Source: Oopsacas minuta (Eukaryota; Animalia; Porifera). From it: 64,000 bases of DNA. The stretch spans positions 481,690-545,689 of the forward strand of contig JAKMXF010000354.1 in the NCBI GenBank assembly GCA_024704765.1. The letters run 5' to 3'. Shown piece after piece: positions 38,538-58,755 of the stretch (within the stretch, counting starts at the first letter, position 1; every line of letters begins with the position of its first letter). The notes beneath the pieces were generated by a model. It was given only the letters and a program-made list of their open reading frames with translations. It did no database searches and was not told the DNA's origin. Position numbers and translations under genes: made by a program.

Positions 38538-41500
38538 TCAATCGGTTTTGAGAATATCCATAGTGCTTCCCAGCAATTGAATCAGTTGTTGCTCGTAATT
38601 CTCAAAGTTCCTCTTCATAATCTCCACGCAAGGCCCGAGGAGTCTTTCAAACGCTCCAATGTCAAGTGCTACAGAATTTATAAGATTGAAATTACGATAA
38701 CTAATAACTGAAATTTTGGAGAGAAATGTCCCTGTACAAAACTGTAGGCTTCTCCCTAAACTTTATGACATAAGAAATATGATTATTAATATTAATTTAT
38801 ACCTGCACACACTACTCTGCCTTGAGCATATACACTGGCTGCTCTAGGTTTGTTCACAAGAAGAGCAAGTTCTAAGAAAATAATTGACTACTTATTTGTA
38901 TACATCAACAATAACGAAACGAAACTCTAATTACAAACCTCCAAAATATCCCCCAACTGAGACAACCGATATATCTACCTCTTCATCACTACCTTCCTGT
39001 TTAAACATATAAATTGGGAAATACACTTTAAAATATTAAAATGATATAATTACCTTATCTCTCATACGAATGGCTACTTCACCTTCTACCATCAAATAGA
39101 ATTCAGTAGCTGTATCTCCCTACATGAATAGGACACAGTTAAACAAGTAAATAAATTGACGAGAAATATATAGATTTAATCGACCTGTTGGATTATAAGA
39201 TCTCCATCACTGTATTCCTCTCTACGTAGGGCATCTGCTATGTTCATACGTTCATAGTTCTAGATATTAGAATACGTAATACAATAGTAATTATTTATTA
39301 ATATCAGCTGATTATAATACTCACATCTAGTGATGATAGCATAGGGATTGAGACTAAGAATTTCTCATACATCTTTCTCTGTAAAAAAATATTCATTAAT
39401 AAAGAGTAGGGAAAATTTTATTATTACTCAATGATGTGTGTGTGTGTGTGTGTTGTATTGCGAGAACACAGTTATAAGAAATTTTTGCTTCTCCCAAGGG
39501 CGTTCTTATAAGCGATAACCACTGTACGTAGTATTCTTGTGTTTGTTTTACGAATACAATGGATAATCATAAATCATTGAAATGGTACCCATCTGTCGAA
39601 ATGAGATAAACTAGTTTATTTACGCTTTTAACTAAAAGGAGTGAAGAATAAACTTAAATCAGAATTTGATTATAAATTTGAGTAAACATCCAGGTGTACT
39701 TTCAAAGATGAATTGTATCTCGCGACCCCCGATTTGAGAAACACTGGTATAGAATATCTGGGCTGCAGAATGAATGTTTTTCCAATGTGAGAGAGGATTA
39801 TACATGAATTCATCGTAGTGAATGCATTCTTTTCATAAAAATGTATTGTTCTAGAAATACGCACTACATTCCTAACTTACGTAATATTTGATACACACAA
39901 TAGATACATATTAGAATAATTACCTTTTTAGAAGCAGATTCCATCACAATTCTCCTGAATGACATTCTGTCCTAAGTTATAAATTATATTATTATAGATT
40001 CTTAACAATAAGAATGAATAAATATCATAAAATTGTTCTATGGACACGATGCGAGTTCCATTCAATACATATACGTATCCACTTAATCGGGTCAGATGGC
40101 CTTGTCTAAATGTAATCCTTTTAAGCAGAGTCTACTGTATTAGTATAATATAATATATTGTACCAGAGCCCAGAGAGTTCCAGCTGTTTTAGCAACAACT
40201 GTTGCTTTCCTAAAGAAAAGAATATAATTTCAATTATGTCATTCAGATATCATTAAAACTAATAAAAAGTGTAATTATAACATACCTTGGTGTGTTGTAG
40301 AGGAGAGCAAGTTCTCCAAAACTACCTTCATTATCATAATGTGACACCTGTGTAGATATTATAACACTAATTCATAATACAAATGTTAATTTTAGATAAT
40401 TTTAAGTCAAATAATTCATCTCTCAATAGGAATTACAGACAAGAATAATGCTCTCACCAATTTAGAAGTACTCTTATCATTTATGTAGACTTCATAGAAT
40501 CCTCTATATGATAGGTAATTATAACAATACTATGAAGTTAAATATCTATCCAAACTTCACAATTTGCATCTACTACTCCTATAAACGGAGTTCACCATAT
40601 GCTCCCCTGAAAAATCTTAGTTTTGTCCGTGGGTCAAAGTGTAAAATCGAATTTGACTAGTCATCTATAGAATATTCAAATAACCTTACTTCTCAATAAT
40701 ATAGAAGAAATCTCCGTCATCTCCTTGCTCAATAAGATGGTCACCAACTGCTGCCTGTTATAAAACACACAATTAAAACTAAACATTACATAATCAGTGC
40801 ATAAATGTAAATTGTTCACAAACCGTTTTTTCAAACATTGCATCTAATACAAAAGTTTTCTGCTCCTAAAGTGATACAAAGAATAAATATAAAGAATACA
40901 CAAGTATATTAATAATTACTCACAGGCTCTAAATTCTTAAATAAGAAACAATTACTGAATGCTTCACATAGTCTCCCTCTCTGTTCATCTGACTTAGGAT
41001 AACAGATCTACCAAATTTTATAATATAAATATTTTCAATACAACCTATTAGATACAAACTTATCTGAACCTTTTGTAGTTCATCTTCGTCTGATGGTGAA
41101 AAAGGCTCAGCAAATACTAACAAATATATAAATACATAACACATTACTCTTATTAACGGGTAATTAAATTAATAGAGAATGCTATACTTTACAATACCTG
41201 AACATCTCCTGCCTCTGTCAAACCGAACAGGAGTGGCTGCTTCATCTGTACAATAAGAGCGTATTAGTTTAATATGAAAATATACATACATACGCAGTAT
41301 AATTTAGAAATATATCTATCACACAACCAAAGCTGTGGTATCCGTATGTGACCGTCTCCAGCATAATATATCTACTATTATACACACCGTACAAAAATTT
41401 AACATTCAACAGCTATCGATTCCCTCGAACGATAATCAAAATGAACAAGTGATAATGTTGAGAGTTCCGTGACAATACACAATACGTATATATTATACAA

Positions 41501-41831
41501 GTTAAAGCAATGAAAAGAGGTAATACACGAGATGTAACAGCTGTTACTCACCGTCATCATCTGATGGCAGGGTGTCCATATCTCCATTTGCATCCTTCAA
41601 TAAAGTAGTGGGATCTGCAGTGAGACCAAGGAGAGAGGAATTATTTTCTTCTGATACTTCCATTTGTCCTACTTCGTTACCATTTCCTTGTTTCTTCTCC
41701 TTCAAATCAGTGAAATAATAAGCTGCATAATCCACAAGATCTTCAGGCTTCTTTCTCAATACAGATAAGGCGAATTCTTGTAATAATTCATTCAACCCTT
41801 CAGGAATAGTGATAGGATAGTGATCAGACAT
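38538..41831 (-). CDS. PRKAR2: cAMP-dependent protein kinase type II regulatory subunit, 16 exons: 41552-41831, 41198-41245, 41070-41116, 40924-41007, 40824-40865, 40690-40754, 40458-40503, 40286-40347, 40164-40209, 39924-39971, 39325-39378, 39185-39259, 39054-39119, 38939-38996, 38803-38871, 38538-38668
   Basis: RII D/D domain ([29 protein letters not shown]), inhibitor site [26 protein letters not shown], phosphate-binding cassettes [11 protein letters not shown] and [14 protein letters not shown], and FERLLGPC. Splice phases are compatible. Confidence 0.95.
39435..39526. repeat. (TG)9 microsatellite followed by a MITE-like relic ending in CACTGTA
   Basis: TG run 39435-39452; inverted TTATAAGAA/TTCTTATAA motifs; CACTG-TA terminus. 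Confidence 0.5.
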
Positions 41832-51659: not shown

Positions 51660-53325
51660 CTATGACTGAGAGGATGGAATGATCTTATTATGCACCCTGG
51701 ATATGTGAGTAGTGAGCACGTACTTCCGGTAGAAAGATTTGAAACAGTAGTGGCATTGGAAGGGCCGCTCACCGCTATGCACTATTAAGTGACGTTTGAG
51801 TCCAGTATTAGACTTGTAAGACCTCTCACAGATGGAGCAATGGAATTTACGTTCTGACAGATCGGTGGTAGTGTTCTTGCTGTTGAGTGTAGGTTGGCTT
51901 GCTGTAGCGAAGTAAGTGGGAGGAGAGCTTGCTGAGTTGGAGGCATCTGTCTGTTGGATGTGAGAAGTAGGGAGAATGGAGTATACTTGAGGTCTATCTG
52001 GTAGACTTTGTACTGAATTAGACGAGGGATCTATTAGAGAGTTAGGGAGACTCAGGAAGGCCTGAGTATTAGGGCGAGGGTGAGGCTTGAATACACCTCG
52101 ACATGATTTACACTGGAAATGGTTTTTATTAGGTGTATGTGGATGCATGTACTCACTAGTCAGGGATAGGTTAGAGAAATTATTCTTGAGTGGAGGAGTG
52201 AAGGGAGAACTGTGTGGAGAGTTCCCTTCTCCAACTACATGCACACTCATAGGGGAATTGAGTGTAGTAGTAGGTGTGTTATTGGGTGTACTATGCTGAC
52301 TATTTGTAGTGAGAGCTATTGAACTCTGTAACGTGAAGTTGATTGGAAGATTAGGAATAGAAGTGTTGAGAACTGGAGAACTCATTGGTAGTATATTCGA
52401 ACTGTTTGTACTAGATGTTACATTTAATAAACTGTCTTGACCTAAGAAGGTAAATGGTGGACTGGTAGGTAGAGTATGAGAAGAGTTGATTACATGTGAG
52501 TTATTGTCTGATTTCACAATATTATTCGAGTTTAGGATAGTAGGGCTATTTGTCTTTGTGGGAACGGCTCGGTTGCTACAAGGAAGGTCAGTCAAATGAG
52601 AATCTTCATCATCTGATGGAAAATATTTGTTTGGGGGACTATGAAATGCTTCTGGGTGTATACTCACTTGATATACGTTTGCTAGAAAAGAAATTTTGTT
52701 ATTTTCTGTAGCTAAACCTGAACAGAATAATTGTGAGCAATATTTTCAGAATTGCAGTTATTATGCAAGTAAAGTATCGAACAAAAACTTTATAAGAATA
52801 ATATACGCCTAGTATTCATAAAGTTTGTAAAATAGAATTACAACATTATTAGCAATTTATATCCGGGAAAATATTAAATTTTCATTTCAATTTGCCAAAC
52901 TTATTGAATACAGTAACTTCTGTATATTTGTTTGTTACGTAAATAATACGTATATGTACGTTGTGAATGATAAAATGTGAATAAAAGTGGAATTACAACT
53001 TGTGCAGAAAGCATTTGCCTTAAATAATATTGCATGTAGTAAAATCCAGCAGATTCGTAAATTCACAGAATTGAGACTCACCTGTATCAGAAACTACTTC
53101 TCCATCTCCACATATTTCATCTGAGTCTTCTGAAGATCTGAATATAGAATTCACCCTCACGGTTTCATACAAGACCCTGTCCTCCTTTGATTGTAAGTGC
53201 ATGTAATATTCAACTGCAAAGTCCACATAGTTGGAGGGCCGTGCTTTCAATGCAGATACCACGAACTCCTGCACCATATCGTGTAATATTAGCGGAATTT
53301 CCATCACAAATTTCTTGGTGGCCAT
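51660..53325 (-). CDS. RII-type dimerization/docking domain + C2H2 zinc-finger protein (gene A), exons 53082-53325 and 51660-52717, 433 aa
   Basis: Exon 1 encodes IPLILHDMVQEFVVSALKARPSNYVDFAVEYY and ends G|GTGAGT (phase 1). The TTCAG acceptor at 52718 (alternative at 52682) joins in frame to an S/T/P-rich ORF ending in two C2H2 fingers with an HSGERPF linker. Confidence 0.75.
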
Positions 53326-55663: not shown

Positions 55664-56632
55664 CTACTGAGAGGCCTGCACATGTGTATAGTAATGGAGA
55701 CGTAGAGAAGAGAAGTGTTTGAACATGATATCGCATTCAAGACATTTGAACAGTGTGACTCTCCCATTAGGTTGAGAAATAATATTCTTTGTGATGATAG
55801 GTTGAGGAATAATATTGTTTGTGATGATAGGTTGAGGTGTGGGAGACTGTGTCTTATCCACAGCAATGTGTACGATATGTTGAGAATAATGGGTATGGTA
55901 CTCAAGTGCATCTCTGAATATGATACCACAGCATTTACATACTAATCCTTCCTCGAGGTTAGTGGAACAAGCGTGATTGAAGTGCTGAGATAATTGGGGA
56001 TGTCCGTTGTAAGTTTTTGTAGTGAAAGGGCGAGCTGAGGCAGGGGGAAGAGAATTGAGGACAAGTTTATGATGAGGTGGGGTACCAGGAGTGCTACACG
56101 GAAGATGGAGTGAATTATTAGACTCGGATTTCTCCGGTATTGATGGTGTTGTAACAAGTGAGCTAACCTCGTGAGAAATAGCAGGGTCTGTTACGAACAC
56201 GATTGCTCGGTTAGAGGACTGGTAGAGAGGTGTCTCACAGGTGCGGTACAGGAGTGTTCCTGGAGGAACAGACGCCTCATCACTCACAGAAGTCAGCTGA
56301 TAAATACCGTAAGGTGGAGATGGAGTTGTGAAGTGATGAGGCTGAGGAGAACTACTTATAAAATCACTATTCTGAGAGATATAACTCTGTTCAGGAACTG
56401 TTTGTTGTTTACTTGCGATACTGCTACATACATGCTCCCTGGGAGTACCAACTGTAGGACTCATTCTCCTCTTCCGTGTACATTCATTCCTATTAGCCCC
56501 TTCCTTCAACTTCTTATGATACTCAACTGCATAATCTATGTAATTATCAGGCCGTTCACATAGCGCTGAAGTTATGAAATCTTGAATCATATCTTGCAAT
56601 GCAGTTGGTAGAAGAATGGGAAATTCACACAT
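55664..56632 (-). CDS. RII-type dimerization/docking domain + C2H2 zinc-finger protein (gene B), single ORF of 322 aa
   Basis: LPTALQDMIQDFITSALCERPDNYIDYAVEYH at the N-terminus, an S/P/T-rich linker, and fingers CKCC..FRDALEYHTHYSQH and FKCLEC..FKHFSSLRLHYYTH. Confidence 0.85.
   Translation of the reverse strand: MCEFPILLPTALQDMIQDFITSALCERPDNYIDYAVEYHKKLKEGANRNECTRKRRMSPTVGTPREHVCSSIASKQQTVPEQSYISQNSDFISSSPQPHHFTTPSPPYGIYQLTSVSDEASVPPGTLLYRTCETPLYQSSNRAIVFVTDPAISHEVSSLVTTPSIPEKSESNNSLHLPCSTPGTPPHHKLVLNSLPPASARPFTTKTYNGHPQLSQHFNHACSTNLEEGLVCKCCGIIFRDALEYHTHYSQHIVHIAVDKTQSPTPQPIITNNIIPQPIITKNIISQPNGRVTLFKCLECDIMFKHFSSLRLHYYTHVQASQ
55768..55828. repeat. 30-bp tandem duplication inside gene B (PQPIITNNII/PQPIITKNII)
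   Basis: AATAATATT(C/G)TTTGTGATGATAGGTTGAGG occurs twice in tandem. Confidence 0.85.
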
Positions 56633-57543: not shown

Positions 57544-58755
57544 ATGAGTACAACATTTCATCTTGCTAGCTCAGGAGAATATCAATCAGAGTTAAAGAAT
57601 TTTAAGCTCAGAAATGGTGATAACAAACTTAGCCTGTTTGGTGCAGTTTCAGAGTTTAAAAATCTCACAACTAAGGTATTAGAAACATATATGGAAATTC
57701 TAGTACAACTTGAATGTATTGATAACGACCTAGAGAGGAAAATCAATGAAATAATTGAGATGAGAGATGTAGTTGAATGGCTATTCCATGATTTATCAGG
57801 TTTATTACAACAGAGGACGAAATTTACTCCGGTACAGTCTCAAATTGGATATTTAATCAGCGAATTGGAACAAATAATATTCATAAAGATACCAAATATT
57901 GAAATAAATTGGGATAGCAAATATAATCCAAGATTGGGTATCTCATATAATCCTTATAGGTTCCGAAATTATCCAATCTGGACGAATGGCAGGAAAGGGA
58001 AGGAAGAAAATACATTCAGCTTTCCTTGTGATCTAGCGATAGATTCTATTACTGGAATGATATATGCAGTTGATTATCAGAATTGTGAAATTTATGTTTA
58101 TGATAAATACGGTCAATATAAAATGAAGTTTAAAGACAGTAGTGTATTAAAAGGACCTCGTAAACTAGCTCTTCAGGGAAAGTACCTATACGTCATAGTT
58201 GAAACTGACGTTATTCTCAAATTCAATTGTGAAAATGGAAGTCTCTTAGATAAAAAGAAATTAAACTTTTTCATCGGTGGAATTGATTCCTGGGAAGATA
58301 AGCTATATGGAGGAGACTATGGAAAGTGTATAGTGCATGTTATGAACGAATCTTTCGTAGGGACTCAAACACTGAGCATTGATGCGACAGAAAAATCTGG
58401 TATACAGTATGTAAAGGCTCGAGAAAACGGTTTATATCTTCTCTTCAAATCTAGTAAAAATTGGTTACAAAAATTTTCTTATACTGGTGCGTTATTGAGC
58501 ACTTTTAGTACAGATGATTTTACAAGTGAAGTTTGGTTCTTTAACTTAGATCTTAGCAATAACATTATAATTACTGCGTCAAAATGCGGATTAATGAGAA
58601 TCTACAACCCGAAAGGAGAATTATTGAAGAGTTATGGAGACACCCTAGAAGATAGTGTCGGAACTATTATTACACCTAGAGGGGTTGTTTTAACGCAAGA
58701 TTACCGTATAATAGTATTGTGTTTGAAGGAAAAGCATTGCTTGCAATGTTTCTAA
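57544..58755 (+). CDS. Coiled-coil + NHL/beta-propeller repeat protein (TRIM-NHL-like C-terminus, no RING)
   Basis: Helical N-terminus followed by NHL-like blades (FSFPCDLAID..IYAVD, PRKLAL, IYNPKGELLKSYG, PRGVVLT..RIIV). Confidence 0.75.
   Translation: MSTTFHLASSGEYQSELKNFKLRNGDNKLSLFGAVSEFKNLTTKVLETYMEILVQLECIDNDLERKINEIIEMRDVVEWLFHDLSGLLQQRTKFTPVQSQIGYLISELEQIIFIKIPNIEINWDSKYNPRLGISYNPYRFRNYPIWTNGRKGKEENTFSFPCDLAIDSITGMIYAVDYQNCEIYVYDKYGQYKMKFKDSSVLKGPRKLALQGKYLYVIVETDVILKFNCENGSLLDKKKLNFFIGGIDSWEDKLYGGDYGKCIVHVMNESFVGTQTLSIDATEKSGIQYVKARENGLYLLFKSSKNWLQKFSYTGALLSTFSTDDFTSEVWFFNLDLSNNIIITASKCGLMRIYNPKGELLKSYGDTLEDSVGTIITPRGVVLTQDYRIIVLCLKEKHCLQCF

Follow-up and report, generated by a model that had tools for sequence, protein, structure and literature searches.

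A conserved glass-sponge gene family joins an RII-type docking/dimerization domain to C2H2 zinc fingers

The handle that defines PKA compartmentalization is the docking/dimerization (D/D) module, whose known carriers outside the kinase are mostly flagellar or ciliary proteins, or metabolic enzymes. Within a 64 000-nt stretch of the genome of the glass sponge Oopsacas minuta (hereafter 'the window': assembly GCA_024704765.1, contig JAKMXF010000354.1, positions 481 690 to 545 689), one open reading frame appears to join such a module to C2H2 zinc fingers. Is this a real gene with a true RII-type D/D domain and, if so, what might its product do?

The frame, here called gene B, is listed among the open reading frames as a complete, intronless CDS of 322 aa plus stop (55664..56632, minus strand), which begins with an ATG and has in-frame stops immediately 5′; by our own arithmetic, 322 stop-free codons at ~35% GC would arise by chance with a probability of ~5e-11 per start. 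From N- to C-terminus its single exon encodes an RII-type D/D domain, an S/P/T-rich linker and two C2H2 fingers. An earlier note, made from the letters alone, had claimed that the frame is uninterrupted and that no splicing is needed to join the domains, and both points hold: 55664..56632 is intact, and because a complete Trinity transcript ORF from Vazella pourtalesii is colinear with the genomic ORF, gene B needs no intron. The linker, the two fingers and the lack of cAMP-binding domains described in that note were likewise recovered, as residues 47-227 are 38% Ser+Pro+Thr, the fingers have exact ligand spacing, and a Pfam search of the full protein gave no cNMP_binding match. Judged by the two cyclic-nucleotide-binding domains that follow the inhibitor site in a PKA regulatory subunit, gene B does not encode such a subunit.

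A true PKA RII regulatory subunit gene lies in the same window, 14 kb from gene B and on the same strand (38541..41831, minus; multi-exon). Its D/D domain lies in exon 1 (41552-41831), which passes Pfam RIIa at 34.3 bits (cut-off 22.4) and ends in a phase-1 donor; the gene also has an FGELALL-containing exon, and its last exon matches the C-termini of RIIbeta/RIIalpha at E 1.6e-13. Gene B residues 4-51 align to this exon 1 with an ungapped core, 38% of 50 aa being identical (single-pair E 2e-12), in agreement with the position-by-position correspondence drawn earlier from the letters. The proposed HMM check gave a mixed outcome, as the RIIa and zf-C2H2 models both matched the ORF, but both below their gathering scores. 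Specifically, RIIa scored 13.2 bits (E 0.07; gathering threshold 22.4) on gene B aa 1-51, gave no match at E<=1 on the full protein, and was also sub-threshold in the orthologue P0008 (15.7 bits) and in the neighbouring paralogue, gene A (15.4 bits).

Because full-protein Pfam searches thus gave no RIIa and only weak zf-C2H2 matches, family profiles were used to show the domains. A profile of the N-terminal regions of genes A and B and of the gene B orthologues matched RIIalpha D/D chains in the PDB (2hwn, 1l6e, 2izx and others), with E from 4e-8 to 1e-6 and residues 6-46 aligned on chain residues 4-44; the best 15 matches were RII D/D throughout, and RIIalpha scored 36 bits against 12.8 for RIalpha and 13 for a radial-spoke RIIa protein. 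In the reverse direction, the nearest matches of the family profile outside the family were RIIa proteins. An AlphaFold2 model of the gene B D/D region (pLDDT 73, from an input alignment that included RII sequences) is a helix-turn-helix, and its best 30 Foldseek matches were all RIIalpha D/D (TM 0.64-0.89, rmsd 0.6-1.8 A), the best six (2izy, 2hwn) superposing 38-40 residues at TM 0.69-0.86 and rmsd 1.1-1.3 A; RIIalpha D/D ranked ahead of RI, radial-spoke, DPY-30 and SPA17 chains. Profile, model, fold search and dN/dS together delimit the domain as aa 4-46 (56495..56623, minus).

Like the D/D of RII, this domain sits at the extreme N-terminus, with a pair of residues in an N-terminal strand (I6, L8) followed by helices at 10-26 and about 31-47. 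All core positions common to D/D families are retained (P9, L12, F19, L24, P28, A35, Y38, L42), and of the equivalents of RII Ile3 and Ile5, I6 is invariant while position 8 is Ile in eight of the nine sequences and Leu in O. minuta. The departures from canonical RII are a Gly8->Ala change at the start of helix I, YH for YF, and a Pxx[Y/F] loop, which in the family reads P-D-N-Y (Phe in P0009) and is neither PxxP nor the R2D2-type Pxx[L/I/V]. On these sequence comparisons, gene B residues 4-46 and the PKA RII D/D domain are truly homologous.

How the module came to be joined to zinc fingers is illuminated by gene A, which adjoins gene B and has the same layout (51660..53325, minus). A phase-1 intron separates its D/D exon (53082-53325) from an exon (51660-52681) that encodes a half-finger, CKSC, together with a pair of Krueppel-type fingers, the latter a classical tandem with an HSGERPFQC linker. 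The spliced product (P0035; 421 aa) is annotated simply as 'Zinc finger protein [Oopsacas minuta]', since Pfam RIIa misses these D/D domains at threshold. Between genes A and B the D/D domains are 46% identical and are the sole region matched by BLASTP, and hhalign aligns their finger regions colinearly (prob 61%, E 8e-5). The gene A D/D exon, with its ..VSDT/G donor, was found in five species; a homologue search with the gene A D/D alone returned only gene A itself, a weak negative given the word and length filters of that search.

The D/D domains of genes A and B share RP.N[YF] and SAL and form one clade apart from RII (support 98/96), which by sequence gives them a single origin and places the fusion before the A/B duplication. 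Separate captures of RII exon 1 by the two genes were considered and rejected on the same grouping. An ancestral fusion would then have joined an RII-exon-1-like D/D module to a C2H2 protein in a lineage ancestral to all hexactinellids sampled, and a tandem duplication after the fusion would have produced genes A and B. Exon 1 of gene A and exon 1 of RII both terminate in an acidic stretch and a phase-1 G/GTGAGT donor; derivation of the module from an RII exon is consistent with the data, though not proven.

At the other end of gene B, both fingers have the exact spacing C-x2-C-x12-H-x3-H, with all eight ligands invariant in nine sequences and with the hydrophobic positions in place (C-x2-C-x3-F-x5-[Y/L]-x2-H-x3-H). 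Finger 1 (aa 230-252, ligands C232, C235, H248, H252; 55877..55945, minus) is modelled by AlphaFold2 as beta-beta-alpha with pLDDT 77-81 and has weak Pfam zf-C2H2_4 and zf-met matches. Finger 2 (aa 295-317, ligands C297, C300, H313, H317; 55682..55750, minus) is near-invariant as LFKCLEC..FK..SLR.H...H and matches Pfam zf-C2H2 (PF00096) over profile positions 1-23 of 23, at 16.6-18.1 bits against a cut-off of 25.2; the orthologues P0005 and P0007 carry a precomputed PF00096 match. The full-length AlphaFold2 model, built from nine sequences, did not fold finger 2 as a finger, and as this model was poor overall (pLDDT 43) it was left out of the fold searches. An ESM Atlas query with the whole protein returned generic C2H2 clusters only and was uninformative.

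The spacer between the fingers is ~42 aa, varies in length and contains a 30-nt tandem duplication (PQPIITNNII / PQPIITKNII; 55778..55837, minus); the extra unit is missing from the other orthologues, and the contig of a close relative has a 30-nt deletion about there (place 55768). Where C2H2 fingers usually contact bases, gene B has atypical residues. Because its fingers also stand ~42 residues apart, with neither a Krueppel/TGEKP-type linker nor a tandem array, it is uncertain whether gene B binds DNA or chromatin.

Two segments of the linker are conserved. Immediately after the D/D domain, a basic cluster read from the orthologue alignment (RKRRMSP, aa 53-59; 56456..56476, minus) is NLS-like and includes an R-R-x-S PKA-consensus serine; a basic run is present in eight of the nine sequences, R-[RK]-x-S in six and lost in three, and the cluster is a putative NLS and putative PKA site. 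Further on, a middle block defined by invariant alignment columns (aa 111-161; 56150..56302, minus) follows the family pattern Y..PPGTLLYRT..A.V..TD.A.S..V..LVT and has a dN/dS of 0.09-0.31. It matches no known family in Pfam, and an ESM Atlas query with the middle region (aa 105-195) was uninformative, with scores <=0.57 that are meaningless; AlphaFold2 gives the block two short strands at pLDDT <50.

Eight full-length orthologues of gene B were found at 37-53% identity, and the order SelO-(NHL)-B-A-SPC25-ANKLE2-HAUS3 is kept across five genomes. Whole-gene dN/dS is 0.21-0.31, with values of 0.04-0.10 in the D/D domain, 0.12-0.25 in finger 2 and 0.4-1.3 in the linker; purifying selection on gene B works domain by domain. 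DNA from a close relative shows indels of 30, +3 and +3 nt within the CDS, in-frame only, and of 5, 1, 1 and 2 nt beyond it. Read depth is flat across genes and spacers, and the reads are therefore DNA of the assembly sample plus a low-coverage relative.

When 1.84 billion representative proteins were searched by profile, members of the family itself turned up in glass-sponge data only. A literature search found no description combining an RIIa domain with C2H2 fingers, and none of the 18 members of a published D/D inventory has a zinc finger (Dahlin et al., 2021; PMC8339350). The suggestion in the earlier note that the fusion is unusual, and that R2D2 proteins lack fingers, is thus sustained by that inventory and that search as far as it could be tested. 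The fusion of D/D and C2H2 domains is real, conserved and of glass sponges, and the combination is apparently undescribed, in that we could not find it described.

Taking the locus as a whole, we think it probable, as one joint reading, that gene B is a functional protein-coding gene peculiar to glass sponges and that its product is a D/D-dimerized zinc-finger nuclear protein, arisen via fusion and then duplication. The D/D domain would form an antiparallel X-type four-helix-bundle dimer, taking the part of the BTB or SCAN domain of other zinc-finger factors, and gene B would work as a homodimer or an A/B heterodimer that directs four (or more) fingers toward nucleic acid or chromatin. The largely disordered S/P/T linker would bear the NLS-like cluster and the conserved block between the two ends. 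The groove of the dimer, which keeps the Ile3/Ile5-equivalent determinants, probably binds a partner's amphipathic helix, not necessarily that of a classical AKAP. Ile3 and Ile5 are key anchoring determinants (PMC8339350), and because their equivalents are kept, gene B may, on its sequence, bind AKAP-type helices or RII.

Were the D/D domain to keep RII specificity outright, gene B might be tethered to AKAPs or enter mixed RII bundles, and so couple cAMP/PKA scaffolds directly to a nuclear or chromatin output, as the earlier note proposed; the data permit this reading, but we regard it as unlikely. It is in line with the domain being closer to true RII D/D than to any other D/D class (36 bits for RIIalpha against 12.8 for RIalpha and 13 for radial-spoke, and the Foldseek order), with the Ile3/Ile5 equivalents at the extreme N-terminus, with R-[RK]-x-S after the D/D domain in six of nine orthologues, with the RII gene 14 kb off on the shared strand, and with the precedent of D/D heterodimers documented for SPA17 and ROPN1L (PMC8339350). 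However, the A+B clade stands well apart from RII and has fixed substitutions of its own (SAL, P.N[YF], YH/YY, loss of the helix-I Gly), which suggests a diverged partner surface; SPA17 has a conserved D/D core yet binds AKAPs poorly (PMC8339350); and the RRxS site is gone in three of nine orthologues, within a linker that is nearly neutral.

Alternatively, the protein might be an adaptor that binds no DNA, its D/D domain docking, as in the R2D2 proteins, into a complex of the cytoplasm or the flagellum (collar body) while the fingers and middle block bind protein or RNA. Outside the kinase, known D/D proteins mostly belong to cilia or flagella (PMC8339350), the gene B fingers are single, widely spaced and lack the canonical linker, and the best-conserved block outside the domains (aa 111-161) resembles a peptide-type interaction motif. 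Against this, the paralogue gene A bears a Krueppel pair with the HSGERPFQC linker typical of DNA-binding factors, a conserved basic cluster follows immediately on the D/D domain, and that domain is closer to RII than to ROPN1L, SPA17 or radial-spoke proteins. We consider the adaptor decidedly doubtful.

More speculative still, and in our view quite improbable, is a role for genes A and B as zinc-finger regulators plugged directly into PKA anchoring, through an RII-derived D/D domain that would compete or co-assemble with RII on AKAPs; if so, the RRxS beside the NLS-like cluster would allow local cAMP/PKA signalling to reach transcription without CREB-type intermediates, a shortcut for signalling in an animal that is syncytial. 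A locus that is no functional gene, whether an ORF arisen by chance or a degenerating copy of RII exon 1 joined to junk, could account for sub-threshold Pfam matches of both domains, but is hardly credible and was rejected on conservation and dN/dS, given eight intact orthologues in conserved synteny, purifying selection focused on the domains with all eight zinc ligands invariant, a complete Vazella transcript ORF and in-frame-only indels in the relative.

The nuclear zinc-finger protein that we favour has functional analogues in the BTB/POZ-ZF and SCAN-ZF factors, which like gene B begin with a module for dimerization, continue through a disordered linker and end in C2H2 fingers, but whose dimerization folds are unrelated and whose tandem finger arrays are usually longer. 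The RII-AKAP system is tied to zinc fingers in the nucleus by AKAP95/AKAP8, a nuclear zinc-finger AKAP, although with the roles reversed: AKAP95 supplies the amphipathic helix, which docks on the RII D/D domain, whereas gene B supplies the D/D domain itself.

Among D/D proteins, the best match in sequence and fold is PKA RIIalpha/RIIbeta (PF02197), with which gene B shares an N-terminal helix-turn-helix of ~43 aa, the core and the Ile3/Ile5 equivalents, and the intron after the D/D exon of gene A has the same phase as that after the local RII exon 1. Unlike RII, gene B has fingers in place of the inhibitor site and tandem cNMP-binding module, and its D/D domain falls below the Pfam threshold, with the Gly8, YF and loop changes given above. 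The R2D2 proteins inventoried in PMC8339350 (SPA17, ROPN1/ROPN1L, CABYR, RSP7/RSP11) likewise have an RII-like D/D domain outside PKA, have a hydrophobic residue for the second proline of the loop, and may form heterodimers within the family; however, gene B is orthologous to none of these, with RIIalpha ranking well above SPA17 and radial-spoke chains, and R2D2 proteins are flagellar, with IQ or other modules and no C2H2 fingers, whereas the gene B family is found in glass sponges only. DPY-30, a COMPASS/MLL subunit, is similarly a D/D-fold dimer that clamps a partner helix in a chromatin setting (PMC8339350), but it belongs to another branch of the superfamily (Foldseek prob <=0.2, rmsd 3.2-3.8 A) and does not itself bear a DNA-binding domain. 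Set beside these systems, the fusion would bring putative nucleic-acid-binding proteins into the D/D superfamily. It is a clean natural case in which a domain was captured, probably from RII exon 1, and it is kept in two conserved and selected paralogues of one early-branching animal class, and the family profile from the D/D alignment can be used to seek further cases missed by Pfam RIIa.

Gene B (55664–56632, minus strand) is, as the earlier note had claimed, one uninterrupted open reading frame, with 322 codons running from an ATG at 56632, which has in-frame stops upstream of it, to a stop at 55664–55666. The window is AT-rich (GC content 30–40%), and by our own arithmetic a stop-free stretch of this length has a probability of about 5e-11 per start, so that the ORF by itself is not a product of chance. 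A collection of 5.8 billion clusters holds eight full-length relatives (37–53% identity, 100% coverage), one of which is a complete Trinity transcript ORF from the glass sponge Vazella pourtalesii (EukProt EP00800). This ORF is identical to the unspliced genomic ORF on Vazella-associated contigs, which confirms both single-exon structure and transcription in a relative of O. minuta, and with it the claim that no splicing is needed to join the domains. The gene order RabGAP-TBC, SelO, NHL-repeat gene, gene B, gene A (the neighbouring paralogue), SPC25, ANKLE2, HAUS3 is kept in four other genomes; in the most divergent genome (L007:5915–10825) gene B is inverted, head to head with gene A, and the NHL-repeat gene is missing. 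In O. minuta this neighbour is a 403-aa intronless ORF (57544–58755, plus strand) with a faint NHL-repeat signal, divergent from gene B and conserved in most glass-sponge loci. The stretch past SelO at L007 holds two UQ_con ORFs and also a fragment of a transposase.

Pairwise Nei–Gojobori estimates of dN/dS between gene B orthologues are 0.21–0.31 for the whole gene, 0.04–0.10 for the docking/dimerization (D/D) domain, 0.09–0.31 for a middle block (aa 111–194), 0.12–0.25 for finger 2 and 0.4–1.3 for the linker (aa 47–110), the deeper pairs being saturated at synonymous sites and the Vazella/L009 pair, with a dS of 0.28, being the most trustworthy. The sequencing runs have flat depth across genes and spacers and are therefore DNA; in a close relative's DNA contigs, indels within the gene B CDS are in-frame only (30, +3 and +3 nt), and those outside it are of 5, 1, 1 and 2 nt.

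On the evidence of sequence comparison, we regard the homology of the gene B N-terminus to the RII D/D domain as solid despite a Pfam score below the cut-off. The Pfam scan found no RIIa (PF02197) match at E<=1 on the full protein, and residues 1–51 alone score 13.2 bits (cut-off 22.4) over profile positions 3–35 of 38. The alignment drawn in the earlier note between the first ~45 residues and the D/D domain of the window's RII gene holds: against exon 1 of that gene, which itself exceeds the RIIa threshold at 34.3 bits, BLASTP aligns 50 residues at 38% identity (pairwise E 2e-12). Every core column common to 30 RIIa domains is kept (P9, L12, F19, L24, P28, A35, Y38, L42). When a profile of the first 50 residues of 10 family sequences was searched against all PDB chains, the 15 best matches were PKA RII D/D domains, the top one (E 4e-8, 36 bits) pairing residues 6–46 with chain residues 4–44 without gaps, and RIalpha reached E 0.69 at best. 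The reverse profile (residues 1–194, searched against 1.84 billion representative proteins) gave 27 matches at E<=1e-3. Beyond the family and the gene A D/D exon, ten further matches were scanned with Pfam, and all were RIIa-domain proteins (fragments of RII as well as proteins with RIIa in tandem, a few of these matches also showing weak IQ-type signals) except one YDG-repeat protein, which aligned to the linker/middle part of the profile. Also from this search came P0011, an RII-like prediction of 337 aa in which the D/D-plus-linker segment is present twice in tandem; this duplication may be genuine or may come from an error of assembly or of the gene model.

The AlphaFold2 model of the D/D domain, built on a 30-sequence alignment, has two helices (10–26 and 31–48, pLDDT 73), and its top 30 PDB matches in Foldseek are all RIIalpha D/D domains, the best being 2izy and 2hwn (TM 0.69–0.86, rmsd 1.1–1.3 A, 38–40 residues), with RIbeta, radial-spoke proteins, RIalpha, DPY-30 and SPA17 ranking lower. 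For so short a domain the Foldseek E-values are weak (0.05), and RII sequences are also present in the model's alignment; on both counts the fold result is corroboration rather than independent proof.

The linker is rich in Ser, Pro and Thr, as previously described (38% of residues 47–227), and residues 47–227 are disordered in the AlphaFold2 model. Directly C-terminal to the D/D domain lies a basic cluster, TRKRRMSP (RKRRMSP being aa 53–59, at 56456–56476, minus strand), in which R-R-M-S-P fits the PKA consensus R-R-x-S; R-[RK]-x-S is found in six of nine orthologues and lost in three. This cluster could act as an NLS whose serine is regulatory, or could be what is left of the RII inhibitor site. 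Within the middle block, aa 111–161 (56150–56302, minus strand; PPGTLLYRT ... A.V..TD.A.S..V..LVT) are strongly conserved, find no match in Pfam or Atlas, and are modelled at low confidence. Short extra contigs in the DNA runs (40–77 nt, 3–4 mismatches) cover 55943–56017, the segment encoding NGHPQLSQHFNHACST; some are at much higher depth. These contigs could stem from an allelic bubble, or from a short repeat at another genomic site.

Both C2H2 fingers have the exact spacing C-x2-C-x3-F-x5-[Y/L]-x2-H-x3-H, and all eight zinc ligands are invariant across gene B and its eight orthologues. It is this conservation, not a Pfam threshold, that bears out the two fingers: finger 2 scores 16.6–18.1 bits, under the cut-off of 25.2, and finger 1 is modelled as beta-beta-alpha (pLDDT ~80). 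The HMM check suggested in the earlier note thus left RIIa and zf-C2H2 both under threshold, and the domain calls come instead from family profiles and motif conservation. The fingers are separated by ~42 residues, variable in length and without a Krueppel linker; in O. minuta this spacer carries a 30-nt tandem duplication (55778–55837, minus strand; PQPIITNNII/PQPIITKNII, 29 of 30 nt identical), one unit of which is absent from the close relative's contig and from the other orthologues. The Pfam scan found no cyclic-nucleotide-binding domain in gene B, in agreement with the earlier reading, and each element of the architecture described there is thus borne out.

Gene A (51660–53325, minus strand) follows gene B in the same orientation, about three kilobases downstream. 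NCBI lists its product as 'Zinc finger protein [Oopsacas minuta]' and places it on the contig that also carries the product of gene B. Its exon 1 (53082–53325) encodes a D/D domain with 46% identity to that of gene B, and its second exon (51660–52681) a half-finger, CKSC, together with a tandem pair of classical fingers linked by HSGERPFQC; joined across a phase-1 intron, they yield the annotated 421-aa protein, and the D/D exon ends in a ..VSDT|G donor in all five species examined. In a tree of 30 RIIa domains (43 columns) the two D/D domains form one clade (UFBoot 98, SH-aLRT 96) separate from O. minuta RII, and by hhalign finger 1 of gene B matches the half-finger and finger 2 the first Krueppel finger of gene A, colinearly (prob 61%, E 8e-5). 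Most simply, the domains were fused once, long ago, and the fused gene was tandemly duplicated before the glass sponges in the sample split from one another. The fused D/D domain may derive from RII exon 1, which would fit with RII being its closest outgroup, with the RII gene (38541–41831, minus strand) lying 14 kb off on the same strand, and with features shared by RII exon 1 (41552–41831) and gene A exon 1, namely an acidic stretch at the end and a phase-1 donor, G|GTGAGT. These features are compatible with exon shuffling, phase agreement alone having a one-in-three chance. The RII gene is a true type II subunit gene, with an FGELALL-containing exon and a C-terminal exon that matches RIIbeta and RIIalpha at ~E 1e-13 versus ~1e-4 for RI.

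None of the 18 members in the D/D superfamily inventory carries zinc fingers (Dahlin et al. 2021, PMC8339350), no paper in the literature searched joins 'RIIa domain' with 'C2H2', and the paper on the O. minuta genome is silent on both PKA and C2H2. Pfam RIIa scores fall short of the cut-off in genes A and B and in their orthologues alike, and the architecture would therefore be invisible in routine domain-architecture tables; gene A, without a precomputed RIIa match, is annotated only as a zinc-finger protein. We class gene B as a lineage-specific protein of the D/D superfamily whose partner domain is new; similar fusions may occur elsewhere in eukaryotes.

Gene B thus has an RII-type D/D protomer at its extreme N-terminus and zinc-ligand geometry, both conserved, and between them a linker modelled as disordered with its basic cluster. 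The D/D domain would dimerize as RII does, and the protein may be a homodimer, or a dimer with the gene A product, displaying several fingers; we moderately favour this picture as a whole. The groove of such a dimer would probably take some amphipathic helix. That this helix belongs to an AKAP, with mixed bundles formed with RII, as the earlier note proposed, seems to us unlikely. The key anchoring determinants of RII, isoleucines 3 and 5 (Dahlin et al. 2021, PMC8339350), do have retained equivalents (I6, invariant in the nine-sequence alignment, and position 8, Ile in eight and Leu in O. minuta), and SPA17–ROPN1L heterodimerization is documented (PMC8339350); however, the D/D clade of genes A and B is marked by substitutions fixed within it, and the case of SPA17 indicates that AKAP affinity need not follow from conservation of the core (PMC8339350). 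Unlike canonical type II domains, gene B begins helix I with Ala, not Gly, and has 'YH', not 'YF', in helix II, and its loop reads P-x-N-[Y/F] rather than Pxx[L/I/V], the hallmark of the type II-like R2D2 subgroup (PMC8339350). An adaptor without DNA binding, the other live alternative, would suit the isolated fingers of gene B, but we hold it unlikely too; the canonical tandem pair of gene A points to a nucleic-acid setting for the family. A D/D-dimerized zinc-finger protein would follow the same logic as the BTB-ZF and SCAN-ZF factors.
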